Source of the DNA: Saccharolobus islandicus REY15A
GTDB taxonomy: Archaea > Thermoproteota > Thermoprotei_A > Sulfolobales > Sulfolobaceae
Assembly (NCBI RefSeq): GCF_000189555.1
Contig: NC_017276.1
Direction: 5' to 3' (one strand)
Length of the DNA stretch: 64,000 nucleotides
Positions 9,049-15,225 of this stretch are shown here, one piece after another. Positions within the stretch are counted from its first letter, which is position 1, and each line of letters opens with the position of its first letter. The position numbers and the translations under genes are program-made. The notes beneath the pieces were generated by a model. The model was given only the letters and a program-made list of their open reading frames with translations, was not told where the DNA came from and searched no databases.

Positions 9049-9091
9049 TGGGCCCGCTGGGATTTGAACCCAGGACCTCTGCCTCGTAAGG
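9049..9091 (-). repeat. Attachment-site direct repeat (3' 43 nt of tRNA-Val), left end of the element
   Basis: TGGGCCCGCTGGGATTTGAACCCAGGACCTCTGCCTCGTAAGG is identical to 15150-15192. Confidence 0.97.
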
Positions 9092-9247
9092 ACTCATACA
9101 GTTGCAATCTTCCGATATATGCAACGCATATATGTTGCGTCTAAATATTTTAAAACATGAAAATCTCATGTATGGACTATTTAAATAAATAATAGGTGAA
9201 AACGTTAGCTCTTGCGTCTTATTATTCCATACTTAACTCCATTCCTA

Positions 9248-9338
9248 ATGAACCCTTCATCTCCACCGGGAAACAAGTTATTCAAAAAATAGCAATTAAT
9301 GTACATTTATTTCATGAATCCCTTATCTGCAGGGAAAC
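9248..9338. repeat. Two imperfect hairpin-forming direct repeats separated by 39 nt
   Basis: ATGAACCCTTCATCTCCACCGGGAAAC (9248-9274) and ATGAATCCCTTATCTGCAGGGAAAC (9314-9338). Confidence 0.55.
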
Positions 9339-9380
9339 TCGATATTTTATAGAAGTAATTGAAAGATAAGAATGATAGAA

Positions 9381-10916
9381 TTAAGTTAAATCTAAAATTA
9401 AATTATCCCTAACATAATCCGGTAAATCTAACTTATTGAAGACTCCTACAAAATGCCAATAGGGAATTTTAACTTCCTTCTCCTTCTTCCTAAGAAGAGA
9501 AGGAGAGTAAGAGCTATGGCGTTTACCAAATAGCCAATAACCGTAAACCTTAGCCTGGTCTTCCTCTTCAACGCTAAACAAATTACCGTTAGCTATAAGA
9601 TAAGCCATTTTAAGAGCGTATTTTAGCACGTATTGCTTAGGGGATAGTATTTTCCTATATGCAGCACCACTGCTATATTCTATAACTGCATCTTTTGGTG
9701 GCTTTCCCTTCCACTTACCGTACTTAATTCTGTGGATTTCGTTTACCGGTCCTTGAATTCCCTCCTTCCTCTTAAAGTCCAAGTAAGCCTGGAGTAAATT
9801 CATATGAAGAGCTGACCCAAAATCCTCTAGAATGTCCATTAACCACTTATCAAGAAGAGCCGTAAATATGTACTTACTGATAAGCGTCTTATCCTTGGGC
9901 TCTAACTTCTTCTCTTTCATCTTTGCTTCCAGGTCTGAGGGTAAGGAGATATTATATCGATAACGTCTAGTATAGTATGTGAAAGGGTCTTCTTTCTTAC
10001 TTCCGAATTTCCTACTCCAATTTATAAGATATGGTATACCAAAGATAAAAACGTGAACGTGAAGAACGTAATCACCGTGAAATTCATAAGCCGTAAAGGT
10101 CTTGATATCCTCACCCTTCCACATTTCTCTTACCCATTTTACCATTCTATTCTTAAGCTGAGTTAGAATAGAGTCTTGTAATGGAATATAACCAATAACC
10201 TTTCTTCCCTCCTTCAACGGAATCACGAGAGGGAATATATGAGGGGTTGTAAGCGTAATCATAATTGCGTTCTTGTATTTCTTGAAGGCATTATCTAACG
10301 CCTTACTACTCTTTATTACTTGTATAAGAGCCTTTTTATTATCGTTAAACCTTGTCTTTTCGGGCATGATCATAAAGTTCCCATTATCGTCCTCAAGGAC
10401 TATAACATTCCTATTCCACTCCTTTATGTTCTCTCTGAATAGGAAAGCGATATCTGAATACTCTCTAGTGCAAGGGCATATTGAGTGCTTATACTGAGAA
10501 ATAAGAAGTGCTCTTTGCCTATATCTGTTAGCCCTTGTGATAACCCTTATCCCTATCTTCCTCAACTTTTTTATTTTTTGCTCTCTGTTTGTGCTTTTTC
10601 CTAAACTGTCAGAATTGCGATTACTTAAACTCAAGTCAAAGCTATCGTTAAGCCGAAAATTTTTTGTTGAAGGTAAAACAAATTGAATTGGCAATTTTTT
10701 CAATTTAAATGAGACCGGATAAGTAGGCAAACGTTCTACTATCCCATTCTCTACAAGGGTTTTAAGGTGTCTTTCAAGTATCTTATAGGCTGAGCGCTTT
10801 GATATTCCCCTCTCCTTTGCATAGTCCTCAGCCATAATAGTAAGTGAGACTGAATTTTCCTTCTTTAGTCTATTTATAATCCAAGAATCAACAAAAGAAG
10901 GAGAAAAAGAGTACAT
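9381..10916 (-). CDS. rep: Rolling-circle replication initiator (HUH endonuclease, two-Tyr type) with N-terminal wHTH
   Basis: Motif I MITLT (about 10248-10262), motif II LHVHVF (HVH at 10053-10061), motif III YVLKY (9618-9632), in canonical order. Confidence 0.85.
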   Translation of the reverse strand: MYSFSPSFVDSWIINRLKKENSVSLTIMAEDYAKERGISKRSAYKILERHLKTLVENGIVERLPTYPVSFKLKKLPIQFVLPSTKNFRLNDSFDLSLSNRNSDSLGKSTNREQKIKKLRKIGIRVITRANRYRQRALLISQYKHSICPCTREYSDIAFLFRENIKEWNRNVIVLEDDNGNFMIMPEKTRFNDNKKALIQVIKSSKALDNAFKKYKNAIMITLTTPHIFPLVIPLKEGRKVIGYIPLQDSILTQLKNRMVKWVREMWKGEDIKTFTAYEFHGDYVLHVHVFIFGIPYLINWSRKFGSKKEDPFTYYTRRYRYNISLPSDLEAKMKEKKLEPKDKTLISKYIFTALLDKWLMDILEDFGSALHMNLLQAYLDFKRKEGIQGPVNEIHRIKYGKWKGKPPKDAVIEYSSGAAYRKILSPKQYVLKYALKMAYLIANGNLFSVEEEDQAKVYGYWLFGKRHSSYSPSLLRKKEKEVKIPYWHFVGVFNKLDLPDYVRDNLILDLT

Positions 10917-10927
10917 AACTTAAGCCC

Positions 10928-11236
10928 TTAAGGTCTCTGTAAGAGGACATCAACCTTTTGATATAACTTCCTTTCCCAATAATACTCTAAATCGTTAGGT
11001 AATGTAATGATATAGTAGTTATTATGCCTTGAAGGAGTCCTTATCCCTATTGGAAACTCCTTACTATCTACTATAATCGTTACTAACCATTCCTTATCCT
11101 TAACGTAAGCCTCAAAGTCTCTTGGAATATAAATAAAGTACTGAGAGTACTCGTATTCCCTTCCCTTGTTGTTAATGTGCCTAGTAAGTTTCTGCAGTTT
11201 AACGCCTGGAATAAGAAGTTGGGGAATTTCAAGCAT
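10928..11236 (-). CDS. Small protein with tandem AbrB/SpoVT-like (swapped hairpin) motifs
   Basis: QYFIYIPRDFE and YYIITLPNDLE repeats. Probable start is the ATG at 11236, overlapping the upstream stop. Confidence 0.55.
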   Translation of the reverse strand: MLEIPQLLIPGVKLQKLTRHINNKGREYEYSQYFIYIPRDFEAYVKDKEWLVTIIVDSKEFPIGIRTPSRHNNYYIITLPNDLEYYWERKLYQKVDVLLQRP

Positions 11237-11615
11237 AAGCCATAACCTCACGCTTTAATATTCTCCTCAATTTGTCAGCATTCCTTACCTTATCTGAATG
11301 TTTAGGAGTGAGGAGAAACGCAATATTTCCCCTAAATGTAATCGTTAGTAGTTCCTTTCCTCTCTGTCTTATCGTAAGTCCGTAATCCTCAATCTCTAAC
11401 GTTAGATTAGCCTCATACTCCACGTAATTTAAGTGAAGTTCTGGTATTGAATCAGCTTTTACGTGATCTATTACGTATTCGGCAATCCTCTTTGGTACTG
11501 GAATATCGTTAATGTAGGCGTTATGGCGGTCTATCGCTATATAAATGCCGTTTATCGTTAGGCTCTTGAAGTCACCATTTGTTACCTTAGCCTTAACTTG
11601 CGTTATTATCTTCAT
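11229..11615 (-). CDS. Hypothetical beta-rich protein
   Basis: 128-aa ORF overlapping both neighbours; GGTGG SD-like sequence before the ATG. Confidence 0.7.
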   Translation of the reverse strand: MKIITQVKAKVTNGDFKSLTINGIYIAIDRHNAYINDIPVPKRIAEYVIDHVKADSIPELHLNYVEYEANLTLEIEDYGLTIRQRGKELLTITFRGNIAFLLTPKHSDKVRNADKLRRILKREVMAYA

Positions 11616-12246
11616 TAACGCCCACCTTGTGAGGGCAAACCTTACTAAATGCGCAGTACTTGCATTCCCAATTATGCCTTGGAACCTTCTCAGCCCTTAA
11701 GAAAGACTTGACAAGATTCTCTAACTCTGTATCCGTTAGTTTTTCATCATAGTGAAATTCCGCAATCCTATCGGGTGTTATATAAAGTAGAACGCCGTGA
11801 GTTGAGCCTAATAGTGTCATATAAATCTTGAGTTGAGTCTCGTGTTCATGAACTGGAATTTTAGTATCGTTCTTTGAGGTCTTTATTTCTATTACAGTAT
11901 CCCCTAAAATTGCGTCAGCCCTTCCTATTAGTTTATAAACTTCATTACCTATCGTTAGCTCTTTGGTTATTGGAACTTCGGTTTTAGCATTTAATTCCCT
12001 TGTAAGGATTCCCTCTATACTTTCGTGAATTAGAGAACCTTGTAGTGTTGAAGGATTATAAGCCTCAGCTAATGTTAGTTCCTTAAACTGTTCTCTGAGT
12101 CTAGGCTTTAATGGACAATATAGTAGGTCTGTTACATAGATGGTATTACTGTCCTTCTTCTCATGAACTTTCTTATCGCTTAACCGTGACTTAAATAGCG
12201 TTCGCGTGAGAGAAAGGTTTTTAAAGTTAGAGTATAAACTTTGCAT
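11593..12246 (-). CDS. cas4: Solo Cas4-like RecB-family nuclease (4-Cys Fe-S); N-terminus possibly disrupted by a nonsense codon
   Basis: LYCP, GSLIHE, GRADAI, IEIKT, QLKIY, CKYCAFSKVC. An in-frame ATG at 12303 is followed by TAA at codon 5. Confidence 0.85.
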   Translation of the reverse strand: MQSLYSNFKNLSLTRTLFKSRLSDKKVHEKKDSNTIYVTDLLYCPLKPRLREQFKELTLAEAYNPSTLQGSLIHESIEGILTRELNAKTEVPITKELTIGNEVYKLIGRADAILGDTVIEIKTSKNDTKIPVHEHETQLKIYMTLLGSTHGVLLYITPDRIAEFHYDEKLTDTELENLVKSFLRAEKVPRHNWECKYCAFSKVCPHKVGVNEDNNAS

Positions 12247-12299
12247 AGTGGGCGCCTCTGGCTTTTTCTTGACTTGTGATTGAACTGCTTAGGCTGAAT

Positions 12300-12464
12300 T
12301 CATGATGAATTTTCTAAATGGCGTTTAATGAAGCGTTTAGCTAATTCCCTTAGTACTGTTGATTTTCCGCGATATCCTTCCTTTTTTACTATCTTATCAA
12401 GTGCCTCTACTTCTTCTTTATCAAGTATGACCGATACCTTTACGGGCTTCCTTACCTTTTTCAT
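12300..12464 (-). CDS. CopG-like ribbon-helix-helix regulator (54 aa, below the ORF-track cutoff)
   Basis: Translated by hand: MKKVRKPVKVSVILDKEEVEALDKIVKKEGYRGKSTVLRELAKRFIKRHLENSS*, an alternating beta strand plus two helices. Confidence 0.85.
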   Translation of the reverse strand: MKKVRKPVKVSVILDKEEVEALDKIVKKEGYRGKSTVLRELAKRFIKRHLENSS

Positions 12465-12709
12465 AGTATTCACTAAGAAAATATATGCGGAAAATAGTGC
12501 TTATCAATATTTCCCATATCAGAAATAGTATTAATTATTTTTAAATTTTTTCCTAAACTTTGGTTATCCGGAAACTCATATATAACGAAAGTAACGTTAT
12601 TTTTTCCTAAACTTCACACCTTAGAACTAACGTTACTAACTTTTCCTTTCTGTATTATGAAAGTTATACCTTATTTCCACTGGAGTAATACTTAAACTAG
12701 TTACCCATT

Positions 12710-12731
12710 TTGGTATAAGCGCTTATACCAA
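12710..12731. repeat. Perfect 22-bp palindrome; candidate origin hairpin or operator
   Basis: TTGGTATAAGCGCTTATACCAA. Confidence 0.8.
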
Positions 12732-12742
12732 TTTGGAACAAG

Positions 12743-13108
12743 TCACTCCTTTTTTAACACGTAACCTTTTACTGTCCTCATTGAAAAGCCTTCTTTTATA
12801 GTGAACTGCTTCTCCTCAAAGAATTGCCTTATACGTTCCGGTAACTGTTGATAGTACTGCTCACTCATGAACCTAACGTTATTCACATCAGCCTTATCAT
12901 AAAGATAACCCCTAACTTCAAGAACTTTAAGGAACTCCTTTATAGCTGAGAGCAATGGGAAGTAGTCTAAAAGTATATCGTGATAGGATAAGTTTGTTTC
13001 ACTCTTGTATTTTTTAATCCCCTCTTCCTCTTGAGGAGAAAGACGTAATGTAATTGTAACATGATTCTTTAACCATCTCTGATAATAAGTAGTTCTTCTC
13101 CTTGACAT
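12743..13108 (-). CDS. Putative DNA-binding protein (RHH-like N-terminus)
   Basis: VTITLRLSPQEEEGIKKYK..LSYHDILLDYF. Confidence 0.6.
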   Translation of the reverse strand: MSRRRTTYYQRWLKNHVTITLRLSPQEEEGIKKYKSETNLSYHDILLDYFPLLSAIKEFLKVLEVRGYLYDKADVNNVRFMSEQYYQQLPERIRQFFEEKQFTIKEGFSMRTVKGYVLKKE

Positions 13109-13218
13109 AACGTTTTTACCCTCTCATTTTACGTTTATATGCCTTTCCCATATTGAATGCAATATTGCTTATCAATATTAAATGAGGAGAAATACCCGTA
13201 AAAGAGCGTAAATTTAGA

Positions 13219-13250
13219 TTGAATGCAAGTTTGAATCAACATTGAATCAA
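13219..13250. promoter_or_regulatory. Tandem TTGAAT(G)CAA boxes upstream of the 121-aa gene
   Basis: Copies at 13219-13228, 13231-13239 and 13242-13250, plus one at 13153-13162. Confidence 0.45.
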
Positions 13251-13597
13251 GAGCCTAAGGACACTAGATAAAATTAGTTATTGTGATAGTTAGTTAAAAT
13301 CTATTCATTTATTGTATAGAAAGACTAAAGAAAACGGATATTTTTAAAAGCAATAGAGAATTATCACGTTAAGAAAACTTTCCGAAATTACTCGATTTTT
13401 CATGAAAGCACAAATTTCCCTTATTTTTTTATGAAAAAAGCATTTACTTAATGAGAAATTTCTGTAAAGGCGTTTCATAGAAAAACGAACTGACTTTACT
13501 AATGTACTTAGCGTGGCAATTTCAGAAATCTACATTAAGGGTTTAAGAGGAAATAAATCTTATATGCAGTTTCCTCTTTTCCCTTGTTAAGTAGTTC

Positions 13598-13702
13598 TAA
13601 AATGACCTCATATACATCTTTATAGTACTTGTCTTCATTCATTAGTTCTTTAATCATCTCTTCTATTTCTTCTTTTTTAGGTCTAGGAATTTCATCTTCC
13701 AT
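13598..13702 (-). CDS. Possible 34-aa micro-ORF or remnant downstream of the integrase
   Basis: MEDEIPRPKKEEIEEMIKELMNEDKYYKMYMRSF*; GGA shortly before the ATG. Confidence 0.3.
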
Positions 13703-13758
13703 GTTTATCCAGTAATATGAACTAGTTTAGAATTTTAAACATATTCTCTAGTTTAAAA

Positions 13759-15039
13759 CTAGAGAAGCTTGGGGGCGTATTTATCATACCATTCCCTTAG
13801 CTCAATTTCTGATATTACGAAATAGTTCTCCTCCATGATCCTAAATTGTTGAGGAGGTGCTCTGCCTTGCAGCAAGTTCACTATTGTACCCGGAACTTTT
13901 TGCTTAATCATGTAAGAAGTGAAGAAGCTTCTGAGATCATATAATCTAAACTCTTTACCCAAAATCTTCCTCATAGCCTCTTTAATCTCAACCCTAAGAT
14001 TATCTTCTCTGAAGGGGAATAGTTTACTCTTCCACTCCTCTATGTTAATACCTTGGGTGGGGTTAGCTTCTGCTAACTTCTTCAAAGAACTCTCGTATTT
14101 CTTAATAAATTCCTCACGGTAGGGTAAGTAGATATCTTTTAGCCATTTAGCCGTCTCTTCATGAAGAAATGTTATGTAAGCTCTCTTAGTTTCACTGACT
14201 TTGCCCAGGTGAATTATCCTGTGCTCAAAGTCCACCTGGTCTACCCTTAAGTTAAGGACTTCCCCCACTCTCAATCCCGTCTCAGCTAAGAGAAGGAAGA
14301 ATGCTTTAGCACCTAAATCCTTTATATTATTAAATATTTGTTTAATAGTGGCTATATCGGGGATAAAATGCTTATACTTAGGCTTAGTTTTAGGAGTTTT
14401 AAATGATTCGTAAAGCTCTCTTGCAATCCTCGGGCTCTTAGGCTTTATTATCTCTCTGATAAATAATTTTAAAGCCTTGGCAGCATGTTCAGCCCTCCCC
14501 TTACTTTCCTCTGATAGGTCTAAAATGTACTCCTTTAACTTAGTAGGAGTTAACTCATAACCCAGTTCAGCTAAAGCCCTCCTTAAGTAATTTATTCTCT
14601 CTTGTGCAGTCTTCTTACTCTTCTCTTGCCTTACCAGTTTCTCAAAGAGTTCAACATCTTCTTTTGTAACTAAATAAGAATTTGAGGGCTCTCTTAAGTA
14701 ATCCCCTAATTCTTGCCATAGTAATGTAAGGAAGAAGTTCCTAAAGCCCTCATCCTTCTTAGCCTTAACTATCACACTTATAGCAGTAGTAGGGTCTACA
14801 TCAGTACTCCTTAAACCGTAAATTATATCACTTAACTCATCAGCTGTTAAAAGTTCTGAGGCCTTCTCAACAACCTCATTAGGGATCCTCTGAATCTTCC
14901 CGTTCAGGTAACGATTTAATGTTGACCTATCTACACCTATAAAACGGGAAACGTAACTTAGGCCATGCTTTTCAATTGCCTTTTTCAATACGTTAAGCTT
15001 TTTCTGGTCATCTATTTTCTCCACGTTAATTTTTGACAT
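13759..15039 (-). CDS. int: Tyrosine integrase, pNOB8-type (unsplit), with N-terminal HTH
   Basis: N-terminal LSYVSRFIGVDRSTLNRY HTH, ETGLRVGE (catalytic R), YDLRSFF, C-terminal ENY tyrosine; gene lies wholly inside the att sites. Confidence 0.93.
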   Translation of the reverse strand: MSKINVEKIDDQKKLNVLKKAIEKHGLSYVSRFIGVDRSTLNRYLNGKIQRIPNEVVEKASELLTADELSDIIYGLRSTDVDPTTAISVIVKAKKDEGFRNFFLTLLWQELGDYLREPSNSYLVTKEDVELFEKLVRQEKSKKTAQERINYLRRALAELGYELTPTKLKEYILDLSEESKGRAEHAAKALKLFIREIIKPKSPRIARELYESFKTPKTKPKYKHFIPDIATIKQIFNNIKDLGAKAFFLLLAETGLRVGEVLNLRVDQVDFEHRIIHLGKVSETKRAYITFLHEETAKWLKDIYLPYREEFIKKYESSLKKLAEANPTQGINIEEWKSKLFPFREDNLRVEIKEAMRKILGKEFRLYDLRSFFTSYMIKQKVPGTIVNLLQGRAPPQQFRIMEENYFVISEIELREWYDKYAPKLL

Positions 15040-15145
15040 AAAATCTCTTTACCACTTATTAACTTTTACATTGTTGCAAATTTAACCTTTACTGTTGCAT
15101 TCACGCATCATTCTATTAATAGAATCACTTTCAATTATATAGAAA

Positions 15146-15225
<80 letters not shown>

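Follow-up and report, generated by a model that had tools for sequence, protein, structure and literature searches.

Organization of the element carrying rep

The window analysed here, a stretch of 64,000 nucleotides from Saccharolobus islandicus REY15A (NC_017276.1), carries on its minus strand the gene rep (9381..10916; ATG start, 511 aa), an open reading frame found exactly as the sequence-only reading had stated, whose product comprises a winged helix, a linker and a predicted two-tyrosine HUH nuclease domain. The gene sits on a 6.1-kb element (window positions 9049-15192) inserted in a tRNA-Val gene, a context absent from that reading. The ends of the element are marked by a 43-nt direct repeat: one att copy lies inside the tRNA-Val(TAC) gene (15149-15225) at 15150..15192 (minus strand), and the other, a perfect duplicate of the 3′ half of the tRNA-Val, at 9049..9091 (minus strand), 290 nt downstream of rep, so that integration leaves the rep operon whole. 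The Rfam scan returned only two tRNAs and the att fragment. Beside the tRNA-Val gene lies an intact tyrosine integrase gene (13759..15039, minus strand; 426 aa, with the Pfam domains HTH_3 and Phage_integrase), which matches the integrase genes of pNOB8, pKEF9-like and related elements by blastn; an intact integrase next to the tRNA and a 3′ tRNA part duplicated at both ends are the marks of the pNOB8 type. Matches of the element to PLSDB plasmids at the DNA level were confined to the integrase and att.

The same element occupies this site in S. islandicus, and a related element was present on a metagenomic contig of 7672 nt with a 141-nt terminal overlap, which implies a circle of 7531 bp. 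The att region of this contig joins the two arms that are separate in the integrated S. tokodaii copy; the 7.5-kb circle is thus a free form of a related element.

Genes of the predicted rep operon and conserved non-coding DNA

We read the same-strand cluster RHH-Cas4-like-ORF128-ORF107-rep, with rep in last position, as an operon. It includes (all on the minus strand): a ribbon-helix-helix (RHH, CopG-like) gene in first position (12300..12473; PF01402, E 5.4e-7), whose S. tokodaii orthologue showed a weak RepB-RCR_reg match; a gene for a Cas4-like PD-(D/E)XK nuclease of 217 aa (11593..12246; TIGR00372, E 6.8e-23; PF12705 and PF01930); and two conserved partners of rep without assigned function, ORF128 (11229..11615; phrog_37938) and ORF107 (10928..11251; phrog_14319). 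On the same strand the element gene survey added ORF121 (12743..13108), the best conserved gene of the element, with an RHH-like N-terminus and a weak DUF6290 match, and, downstream of the integrase gene, ORF55 (13535..13702), which encodes a small acidic protein. Searches of ORF128, ORF107 and ORF121 against PDB sequences gave chance-level matches only.

A non-coding block (13109..13260, minus strand), nearly identical in five elements, is a candidate origin and/or operator. It contains the iteron-like sequences TGATTCAA and GCATTCAAT, each present twice, a TATA-like box and the hairpin AATATTG-ATAAG-CAATATT (13160-13178), of which the repeat search detected a second inverted-repeat copy, AATATTG-ATAAG-CAcTATT, just upstream of the RHH operon (12493..12511). 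Every element of the family also has a perfect 32-nt palindrome at the place corresponding to 12705..12736 (half-sites CCATTTTGGTATAAGC and GCTTATACCAATTTGG), with positions that covary across elements. Since the hairpin copies lie directly upstream of TATA-like boxes, they may be operators only; the best candidates for the origin are the iteron/hairpin block 13109-13260 and the palindrome 12705-12736.

Catalytic motifs of Rep

The motifs ITLT (from aa 220), HVHV (aa 286) and YVLKY (aa 429) occur in the order of Rep proteins, as had been proposed from the sequence. Alignments and AlphaFold2 (AF2) models delimited them as follows: motif I, IMITLT (aa 218-223; 10248..10265, minus strand), on strand E216-223; motif II, LHVHVFIF (aa 285-292; 10041..10064, minus strand), on strand E285-292 and including H286 and H288, which we take to be the metal-binding histidines of the HUH signature; and motif III, YVLKYALK (aa 429-436; 9609..9632, minus strand), on helix H426-442 and including the predicted catalytic tyrosines Y429 and Y433. 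Eight motif residues (T221, T223, H286, H288, Y429, K432, Y433 and K436) are invariant in the alignment of 49 full-length Sulfolobales homologues. A wider alignment was extended by 14 distant sequences down to ORF1 of HRPV-1 (identity 21-26%), and there the sole invariant columns are R189, T221, E278, H286, H288, Y429, Y433 and Y460. With motif residues conserved to this degree, the match is more than chance.

Each motif has the expected form. Motif I fits the pattern uuTuT, T221 being invariant in the close and distant sets and T223 in the close set; motif II lies on a beta-strand and has two histidines flanking a hydrophobic residue, with more hydrophobic residues behind them, H286 and H288 being invariant in the 49 close and 14 distant sequences; and the two-tyrosine pattern Y-x-x-K-Y has both tyrosines invariant in the two alignments and K432 in the close set. 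The helix bearing Y429 and Y433 is C-terminal to HUH, 141 residues beyond it, which is the order of Reps and not that of relaxases, whose catalytic tyrosine is N-terminal to HUH.

Relatives and distribution of Rep

The Pfam family REP_ORF2-G2P (PF23343) was matched by all 49 homologues (best E 1.6e-7) and is present as a precomputed domain in four of them. The window Rep scored 17.9 bits (E 0.0038), under the gathering threshold of 27.8 bits, yet with the whole set of homologues matching and HRPV-1 ORF1 reaching 28.1 bits, above the curated cut-off, it is at family level a divergent PF23343 relative by sequence, sub-threshold individually. HRPV-1 ORF1 was also found by tblastn with Rep (E 6e-5); Rep is thus homologous to the Rep of alphapleolipoviruses. 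Some members of the family showed weak Pfam matches to Phage_GPA.

The architecture had been called unusual, which proved overstated: distant relatives of 460-500 aa align from profile position ~20-55 to ~485, from the winged helix through the C-terminus, and the layout of winged helix plus HUH domain is common to the whole family. The searches agree with the view that few Reps of this sort are known from Sulfolobales: no PLSDB plasmid had a protein match to Rep and no paper on them was found. In the phage collection the matches were restricted to HRPV-1 and a fragment in SMV2, and strict peptide-pattern scans detected one locus in GTDB genomes and one in IMG/VR. The SMV2 fragment (gp48) is degenerate: it has no winged helix, H286 is replaced by Y and Y433 by N, and it adjoins genes annotated as ‘conserved conjugative plasmid protein’. 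The copy of M. yellowstonensis is split into 98 and 323 aa, and short copies are present in S. shibatae and A. brierleyi.

Predicted structure of Rep

The two AF2 models of Rep are confident (pLDDT 80.2 and 81.4; pTM 0.69 and 0.81). They show a winged helix at aa 8-72, followed by a linker that is disordered (aa 81-108; 10593..10676, minus strand; pLDDT <50) and an alpha/beta core, in which motif I and HUH are on neighbouring strands and YVLKY is on a helix. The suggestion that the first ~75 aa form a winged helix (its quoted string corresponds to aa 24-62) was confirmed in the models, with the H-H-H-beta-beta succession H8-19, H25-36, H40-56, E60-63 and E69-72 (10701..10895, minus strand), and by Foldseek matches at the maximal probability score to CadC, Zalpha, ST1889, MarR, MecI and AspA. 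The claim that long insertions separate the motifs was true in part: members of the Sulfolobales clade carry two insertions that distant relatives lack, one of about 15 residues behind motif I (aa 232-244, forming a beta-hairpin) and one of about 45 residues behind motif II (aa 297-343).

Significant structural matches of the model were obtained only to predicted structures of related Reps (Foldseek, BFVD): protein 1 of HRPV-1 with the core (E 1.2e-11, about 500 columns), and numerous replication initiators of microviruses together with the Rep of a Vibrio inovirus (E 1e-6 to 1e-3). When the PDB was searched with the full model and with the core-only model (aa 165-480), the top matches of non-trivial probability to the core were all HUH nucleases (Helitron, AAV Rep, MVM NS1, WDV, circovirus), none of them significant (best E 0.011-0.03, TM <=0.35). 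PDB sequence searches with Rep and with the profile of 49 sequences returned nothing useful, and hhalign against phiX174 gpA aligned the HUH strand alone (E 0.013, low probability). The conservation of the motifs, PF23343 in 49/49 homologues, the homology to HRPV-1 ORF1 and the microvirus and inovirus fold matches support the assignment of the sequence-only reading to two-tyrosine initiators of superfamily I type; sequence and model thus support the view that Rep is an HUH-superfamily protein with its motifs in the order of Reps and a winged helix at its N-terminus.

Proposed function of Rep and alternative explanations

We conclude with good confidence that rep encodes the replication initiator of the 6.1-kb integrative element (9049-15192) in tRNA-Val. 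The integrase would excise the element as a circle, and, if phiX174 gpA and further HUH Reps are taken as analogues, the winged helix would anchor Rep on double-stranded origin repeats. On the same analogy, H286 and H288 would hold a divalent metal and one tyrosine would nick one strand, becoming covalently linked to the 5′ phosphate; the free 3′-OH would prime the host polymerase for unidirectional synthesis; and, after one round, the second tyrosine would cut the regenerated site, while the first would close the displaced strand to a single-stranded circle. For the winged helix the sequence-only reading had suggested origin recognition or autoregulation as possible roles; the operon, however, has a candidate regulator of its own, the RHH protein (12300-12473), which would probably act as its repressor.

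HUH enzymes serve in both replication and transfer, and Rep might instead be a relaxase-like mobilisation nickase, nicking the excised element for single-strand transfer or packaging and not for vegetative replication. The integrase is of the type of Sulfolobus conjugative plasmids and the SMV2 fragment adjoins the genes annotated as conjugative mentioned above; the motif order is nevertheless that of Reps, with the tyrosines after HUH, the nearest relatives that could be identified are replication initiators of viruses and plasmids, and neither a replication protein other than Rep nor transfer genes were recognisable on the element (Pfam, NCBIfam, PHROGs). Moreover, we know of no relaxase in Sulfolobus conjugation, and we regard this role as very unlikely. 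The two tyrosines with HUH are also those of IS91 and Helitron, and the Helitron transposase was the top PDB match to the core, though at E 0.03, which would fit a Y2 transposase (IS91, ISCR or Helitron-like) moving the element by rolling-circle transposition. Against it, the ends of the element are defined by a duplicated tRNA att with a tyrosine integrase gene next to it, Y2_Tnp was not matched in Pfam even at E 1, the N-terminus is a winged helix and not a zinc finger, and a free circle with an att junction exists; the chance that Rep is such a transposase is very slim indeed.

Several genomic copies are truncated or broken (SMV2 gp48, M. yellowstonensis, S. shibatae, A. brierleyi), as would be expected if rep were a decaying or domesticated remnant encoding a DNA-binding protein without nicking activity. 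The window copy, however, is full length with every catalytic residue, all eight genes of the element are intact and the 43-nt att repeats are still identical, making decay of this copy highly improbable. Least credible of all is a non-HUH initiator, Rep_trans or Rep-Arvir-like, with fortuitous motifs. Errors of this sort are documented, the motif-based HUH assignments of the archaeal Reps of pRT1 and pAMT11 having been wrong (PMC13107129), and the PDB fold matches of Rep were not significant; but neither Rep nor its homologues matched Rep_trans (PF02486) or DUF7845 (PF25227) in Pfam to E 1, Rep_trans structures were not among the Foldseek matches listed, the significant structural matches were HUH-type Reps of microviruses, an inovirus and alphapleolipoviruses, and the family-wide invariant columns singled out were the HUH and Tyr motif residues. 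A pleolipovirus-like provirus was also considered and rejected because the element has no structural module: none of its eight ORFs matched a VP3-like membrane protein, a VP4 spike, ORF6/7 or an ORF8-like ATPase (Pfam, NCBIfam, PHROGs), and Rep is the sole part in common with Pleolipoviridae.

Significance

Rep is known in kind, while the integrative replicon family to which it belongs appears to be undescribed: literature searches found no published description of it in Sulfolobales, and the genome paper of S. islandicus LAL14/1 does not mention the element. The Rep-Arvir paper (PMC13107129) deals with a different, non-HUH family. Acting as a replication initiator, Rep would connect the mobile elements of Sulfolobales with the family of Reps used by haloarchaeal pleolipoviruses and by small replicons from hot-spring metagenomes. 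To our knowledge, the plasmid replication proteins of Sulfolobales known so far are primase-polymerase/helicase or MCM-like, so that a replicon based on an HUH nickase would give this model order a second way of replicating plasmids, with a different mechanism. The 2.8-kb operon and about 500 nt of conserved non-coding DNA could provide a compact, integrase-switchable shuttle vector, and more than 130 ‘hypothetical proteins’ and PHROG 25834 would receive a predicted function.

A more speculative extension, which we consider unlikely as it stands, is that the 6-7.5 kb elements are the first HUH-driven rolling-circle replicons of Sulfolobales, and maybe satellites, with spindle-shaped or tailed-spindle viruses in the same cell packaging their circles in single- or double-stranded form; a hint of physical contact with viruses of this sort comes from the degenerate rep fragment that SMV2 carries. 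If true, it would imply a single-stranded-DNA stage at ~80 °C and low pH, and Sulfolobus genetics would gain a new vector backbone of small size.

Comparison with known systems

Among the HUH enzymes of Sulfolobales mobile elements, the only one that we know to have been studied by experiment is the rudivirus Rep SIRV1 ORF119. As it is outlined in PMC13107129 (citing Oke et al. 2011), it is a dimeric protein of 119 aa acting on a linear hairpin-ended genome, with one tyrosine and no winged helix, unlike the window Rep. No similarity between the two was detected in any search run. The plasmids of the pRN family and of the pSSVi/pXQ1 type resemble the element in their Sulfolobales hosts, size (5-8 kb) and tRNA integration, and in pRN1 a CopG-like RHH gene likewise heads the replication operon (PMC4234260); these plasmids replicate through the primase-polymerase/helicase RepA (PMC2777425), whereas the element has no RepA and a predicted HUH nickase.

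The initiators of the phiX174 gpA, microvirus and inovirus gpII types share with Rep the motif order, Y-x3-Y on one helix and the lack of a helicase domain, although the similarity in sequence to gpA is confined to the HUH strand. We know of no N-terminal winged helix or integrative lifestyle among gpA-type phage initiators. The betapleolipovirus SNJ2 is a temperate archaeal element with a hairpin origin that, like the element described here, pairs an integrase with an initiator of rolling-circle replication that includes a DNA-binding domain (PMC13107129); its Rep-Arvir protein, however, has a Rep_trans/TBP-like fold and not an HUH one (PMC13107129), and the rep operon of our element is not split by integration. 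The same logic is followed by the pSAM2-type elements of actinomycetes, which are small and reside in a tRNA gene, from which a tyrosine integrase excises them before an HUH Rep amplifies them (PMC2440964); they differ in being bacterial, larger (11-17 kb) and equipped with conjugation genes, and their rolling-circle initiator RepSA is of a different HUH subfamily, its sole match (E 0.049) being to HRPV-1 ORF1.

HRPV-1 infects Halobacteria and not Sulfolobales, and as a virus it has genes for a spike, a membrane protein and an ATPase, none of which is detectable on the element. Its ORF1 has a helix-hairpin-helix insert near the C-terminus that is absent from the window Rep, and the inserts that follow motifs I and II are particular to the Sulfolobales clade. 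Despite an identity of just ~22-27%, the two proteins are homologous across the catalytic core, similar in length (500 and 511 aa) and both without a helicase domain, with the same motifs, VTLT, HLHV and YLGKY in HRPV-1 ORF1.

The Rep protein and its homologues

The rep gene (9381-10916, minus strand) begins with ATG and encodes 511 amino acids, with ITLT (motif I), HVHV (motif II, the HUH motif) and YVLKY (motif III) starting at residues 220, 286 and 429. The sequence-only reading had given this ORF and these motifs, all of which were found as described, and the N-terminal string it quoted maps to residues 24-62. A word-indexed search returned 139 homologues, every one from a Sulfolobales genome or a hot-spring metagenome (named sources: Saccharolobus islandicus, S. 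shibatae, Sulfurisphaera tokodaii, S. ohwakuensis, Acidianus brierleyi and one Sulfolobus single-cell genome); almost all are annotated as hypothetical, and one is a 'rolling circle replication-associated protein' (UniRef). In the alignment of 49 full-length homologues (52-76% identity to the window protein) T221, T223, H286, H288, Y429, K432, Y433 and K436 are invariant. A profile search run exhaustively over 1.84 billion cluster representatives found 148 clusters with E <= 1e-3, and several distant relatives of 460-500 amino acids aligned to the profile from position ~20-55 through ~485. Only eight columns (R189, T221, E278, H286, H288, Y429, Y433, Y460) are invariant once these relatives and ORF1 of Halorubrum pleomorphic virus 1 (HRPV-1) are aligned with the window protein (21-26% identity); five of them (T221, H286, H288, Y429, Y433) belong to motifs I-III.

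Against Pfam PF23343 (REP_ORF2-G2P) the window protein scores E 0.0038 and 17.9 bits, under the 27.8-bit cut-off; the family is matched by all 49 homologues (best E 1.6e-7), and HRPV-1 ORF1 lies above the cut-off. ORF1, a rolling-circle endonuclease, is the hallmark of the alphapleolipoviruses (PMC10599561). It was one of two tblastn matches among phage records (27% identity over Rep residues 168-308, E 6e-5), the other being a 283-aa protein of Sulfolobus monocaudavirus SMV2 (54% identity). Residues 173-511 match PHROG 25834 ('unknown function'; E 7e-178), and no relative is encoded by the PLSDB plasmids. Motif conservation, the PF23343 matches and the homology to HRPV-1 ORF1 bear out the earlier identification as a two-tyrosine HUH Rep; the protein belongs to an already known kind of Rep.

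Altered or distant copies occur elsewhere. In the bicaudavirus SMV2, gp48 (L001 5995-6846, corresponding to NC_029020.1 42308-43159) is a shortened, degenerate rep copy without the winged helix, with H286 replaced by Y, Y433 by N, and ambiguous residues in the record; judged from its sequence, it is evidence of past recombination between rep elements and a virus. The homologue of Metallosphaera yellowstonensis MK1 (L004 9965-11451) is broken into ORFs of 98 and 323 amino acids and is therefore probably a pseudogene; this locus has no ORF of integrase size at the usual place upstream of the RHH (CopG-like ribbon-helix-helix) and Cas4-like genes. Distant relatives (~25% identity) are also encoded on three hot-spring metagenome contigs of 4-9 kb (L010, L011, L012) that have Laminin_G_3 or DUF2341 genes but lack an integrase; these contigs could represent small viruses or plasmids with other thermophilic archaea as hosts.

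Predicted structure and domain layout

In the AlphaFold2 model built on the 49-sequence alignment (mean pLDDT 80.2, pTM 0.69), residues 8-72 form a winged helix of three helices and a beta-hairpin, and residues 81-108 are disordered. Motif I lies on a strand (216-223), the HUH motif on another (285-292) and YVLKY on a helix (426-442), with a helical insert at roughly residues 311-385. The winged helix matched CadC, Zalpha, ST1889, MarR, MecI and the pNOB8 centromere-binding protein AspA, all with probability 1.0. Compared with predicted viral structures, the model matched HRPV-1 protein 1 (E 1.2e-11, ~500 columns aligned) and the SMV2 protein (E 5e-33) and, between E 1e-6 and 1e-3, a Vibrio inovirus Rep and dozens of replication initiators from microviruses. 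Solved structures matched by the catalytic part with non-trivial probability were all HUH nucleases (MVM NS1, Helitron transposase, AAV Rep, wheat dwarf virus Rep, circovirus Rep), none better than E 0.011, a limit that a core-only model (pLDDT 81.4, pTM 0.81) left unchanged; no member of this Rep subfamily was found among the solved structures. The fold comparison therefore supports an HUH domain, short of proof.

The sequence-only reading had called this architecture unusual, which was overstated. V23, Y32, L54, G58, I59, E61 and P67 of the winged helix are invariant in the 49-member alignment of the Sulfolobales clade, and the distant relatives align with it, some giving weak HTH Pfam matches; the layout of winged helix plus HUH domain is thus a family trait. 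Specific to the Sulfolobales clade are ~15 additional residues past motif I and ~45 past motif II, whereas HRPV-1 ORF1 has its own helix-hairpin-helix insert, absent from the window protein.

The integrated element and its relatives

The rep gene lies on an integrated element of 6.1 kb (9049-15192), between perfect 43-nt direct repeats (9049-9091 and 15150-15192), the second forming the 3' half of tRNA-Val(TAC) (gene 15149-15225). All genes between the repeats are on the minus strand: an intact tyrosine integrase (426 aa, N-terminal HTH) whose DNA resembles integrases of pNOB8-type conjugative plasmids, ORF55, ORF121, RHH, a Cas4-like nuclease (TIGR00372, E 7e-23), ORF128, ORF107 and rep. The genes from RHH through the Cas4-like nuclease, ORF128 and ORF107 to rep overlap one another or adjoin directly, and appear to form a single operon. 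Beyond the repeats are ordinary chromosomal genes (an FttA/aCPSF1-type nuclease on one side; tRNA-Ser, alcohol dehydrogenase and amidase on the other). Pfam, NCBIfam and PHROGs revealed no recognisable capsid, spike, ATPase or transfer gene on the element, which we therefore call an integrative plasmid; it may have a satellite lifestyle. Sulfolobus turreted icosahedral virus 1 has an unannotated stretch (14570-14676) that resembles, at 75.7% identity over 109 nt, the region from the end of RHH into the beginning of the Cas4-like gene (12210-12318).

An S. islandicus genome (L008 4744-11403) carries this element too, at the same chromosomal site and with the same att (82% identity over 6.1 kb); S. 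tokodaii strain 7 has a related integrated copy, and further relatives occur on metagenomic contigs. They share integrase, ORF121, RHH, Cas4-like, ORF128, ORF102/107 and rep, and vary past the integrase and past rep. Compared with S. islandicus (L008 10638-11184), the window element (9268-9297) lacks ~550 bp encoding a 177-aa ORF downstream of rep, where other relatives have unrelated ORFs of 105-208 amino acids; this site beside att is therefore a variable cargo slot.

The two ends of a 7672-nt metagenomic contig (L002, JGI 3300026813) overlap by 141 nt (99.3% identity), implying that a related element forms a circle of 7531 bp. In place of a tRNA-Val fragment, the att core of this element is CCCTTAAGAGG. 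In its rep-to-integrase spacer, the arms separated in the integrated S. tokodaii copy are joined around this core, as an excised form should look. On the host side of the S. tokodaii-type core stands a conserved GC-rich stretch of ~60 nt (GGGGTGCCCGTGGCGGAATTAGAAG...CGCCGCGGGTAAACA; L006 11330-11400 in S. tokodaii), duplicated in M. yellowstonensis (L004 12236-12304 and 13429-13497); ARAGORN found no tRNA in it, and the stretch may represent a small RNA gene that lacks annotation and serves as integration target. TGCAAC repeats in both arms flanking the att core in all elements (window 9101, 9120, 15073, 15094; L002 3400-3640) are probably arm-type integrase binding sites.

Conserved non-coding blocks

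ORF121 and its upstream spacer are the best-conserved DNA of the element family (84-85% identity; rep only 72-77%). The non-coding block upstream of ORF121 (13109-13260) shows almost no differences among five elements with genes of only 72-85% identity, and contains two copies each of the iteron-like repeats TGATTCAA and GCATTCAAT, a TATA-like box, and a 7-nt inverted repeat with an ATAAG loop (hairpin AATATTG-ATAAG-CAATATT, 13160-13178), which recurs as a near-copy upstream of the RHH-rep operon (12493-12511). Just past ORF121 is a perfect 32-nt palindrome (12705-12736, CCAnnTTGGnATAAGCGCTTATnCCAAnnTGG) conserved in every element (L002 6684-6705; L008 7187-7208; L009 3206-3227), with three copies in S. 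tokodaii (L006 6887-6908, 8085-8106, 11150-11171), one within the Cas4-like gene. One base pair covaries between its arms (T-A, A-T, G-C). In single-stranded form its folding is much stronger than that of shuffled controls (z -4.6). Possible roles are an origin hairpin or a site bound by a dimeric protein. Together, these blocks resemble the iteron-plus-hairpin origins of rolling-circle plasmids and form a candidate origin. They adjoin promoters, a position that suits operators just as well.

Alternative roles and proposed mechanism

Two archaeal plasmid Reps have been misassigned as HUH proteins on motifs alone (PMC13107129). The DUF7845 (Rep_trans-like) family of that work gave no signal in the window protein or its 49 homologues, and the matches of our model to predicted viral Rep structures (HRPV-1, microvirus, inovirus) make a non-HUH fold unlikely. 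A relaxase is unlikely, given the order of the motifs and the kind of proteins to which Rep is related, and a Y2 transposase is improbable on an element whose ends are made by the integrase. A dead gene is improbable for the window copy, which is intact; decayed copies occur in M. yellowstonensis and SMV2.

The analysis shows homology, motifs, domain layout, operon and element structure, and that the family has a free circular form; from the biochemistry of phiX174 gpA-type enzymes we infer how it might act. The integrase would excise the element as a circle, and Rep would dock at the origin repeats via its winged helix, H286 and H288 binding a divalent metal. One tyrosine would nick one strand and remain joined to the 5' end while a host polymerase extends the 3'-OH; the second tyrosine would cut the regenerated site and the first reseal the displaced strand. 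Expression level would be set by the RHH protein.

No description of an element combining integrase and HUH Rep in Sulfolobales was found in the searchable literature, from which many subscription papers are missing, so that the negative result carries little weight. Parallels are the pSAM2-type elements of bacteria, with integrase and HUH Rep in a tRNA gene (PMC2440964), and an RCRE-bearing provirus of haloarchaea (PMC10599561). In the window element att lies 290 nt past the rep stop codon, so that integration leaves the rep operon unsplit, unlike in SNJ2 (PMC13107129).
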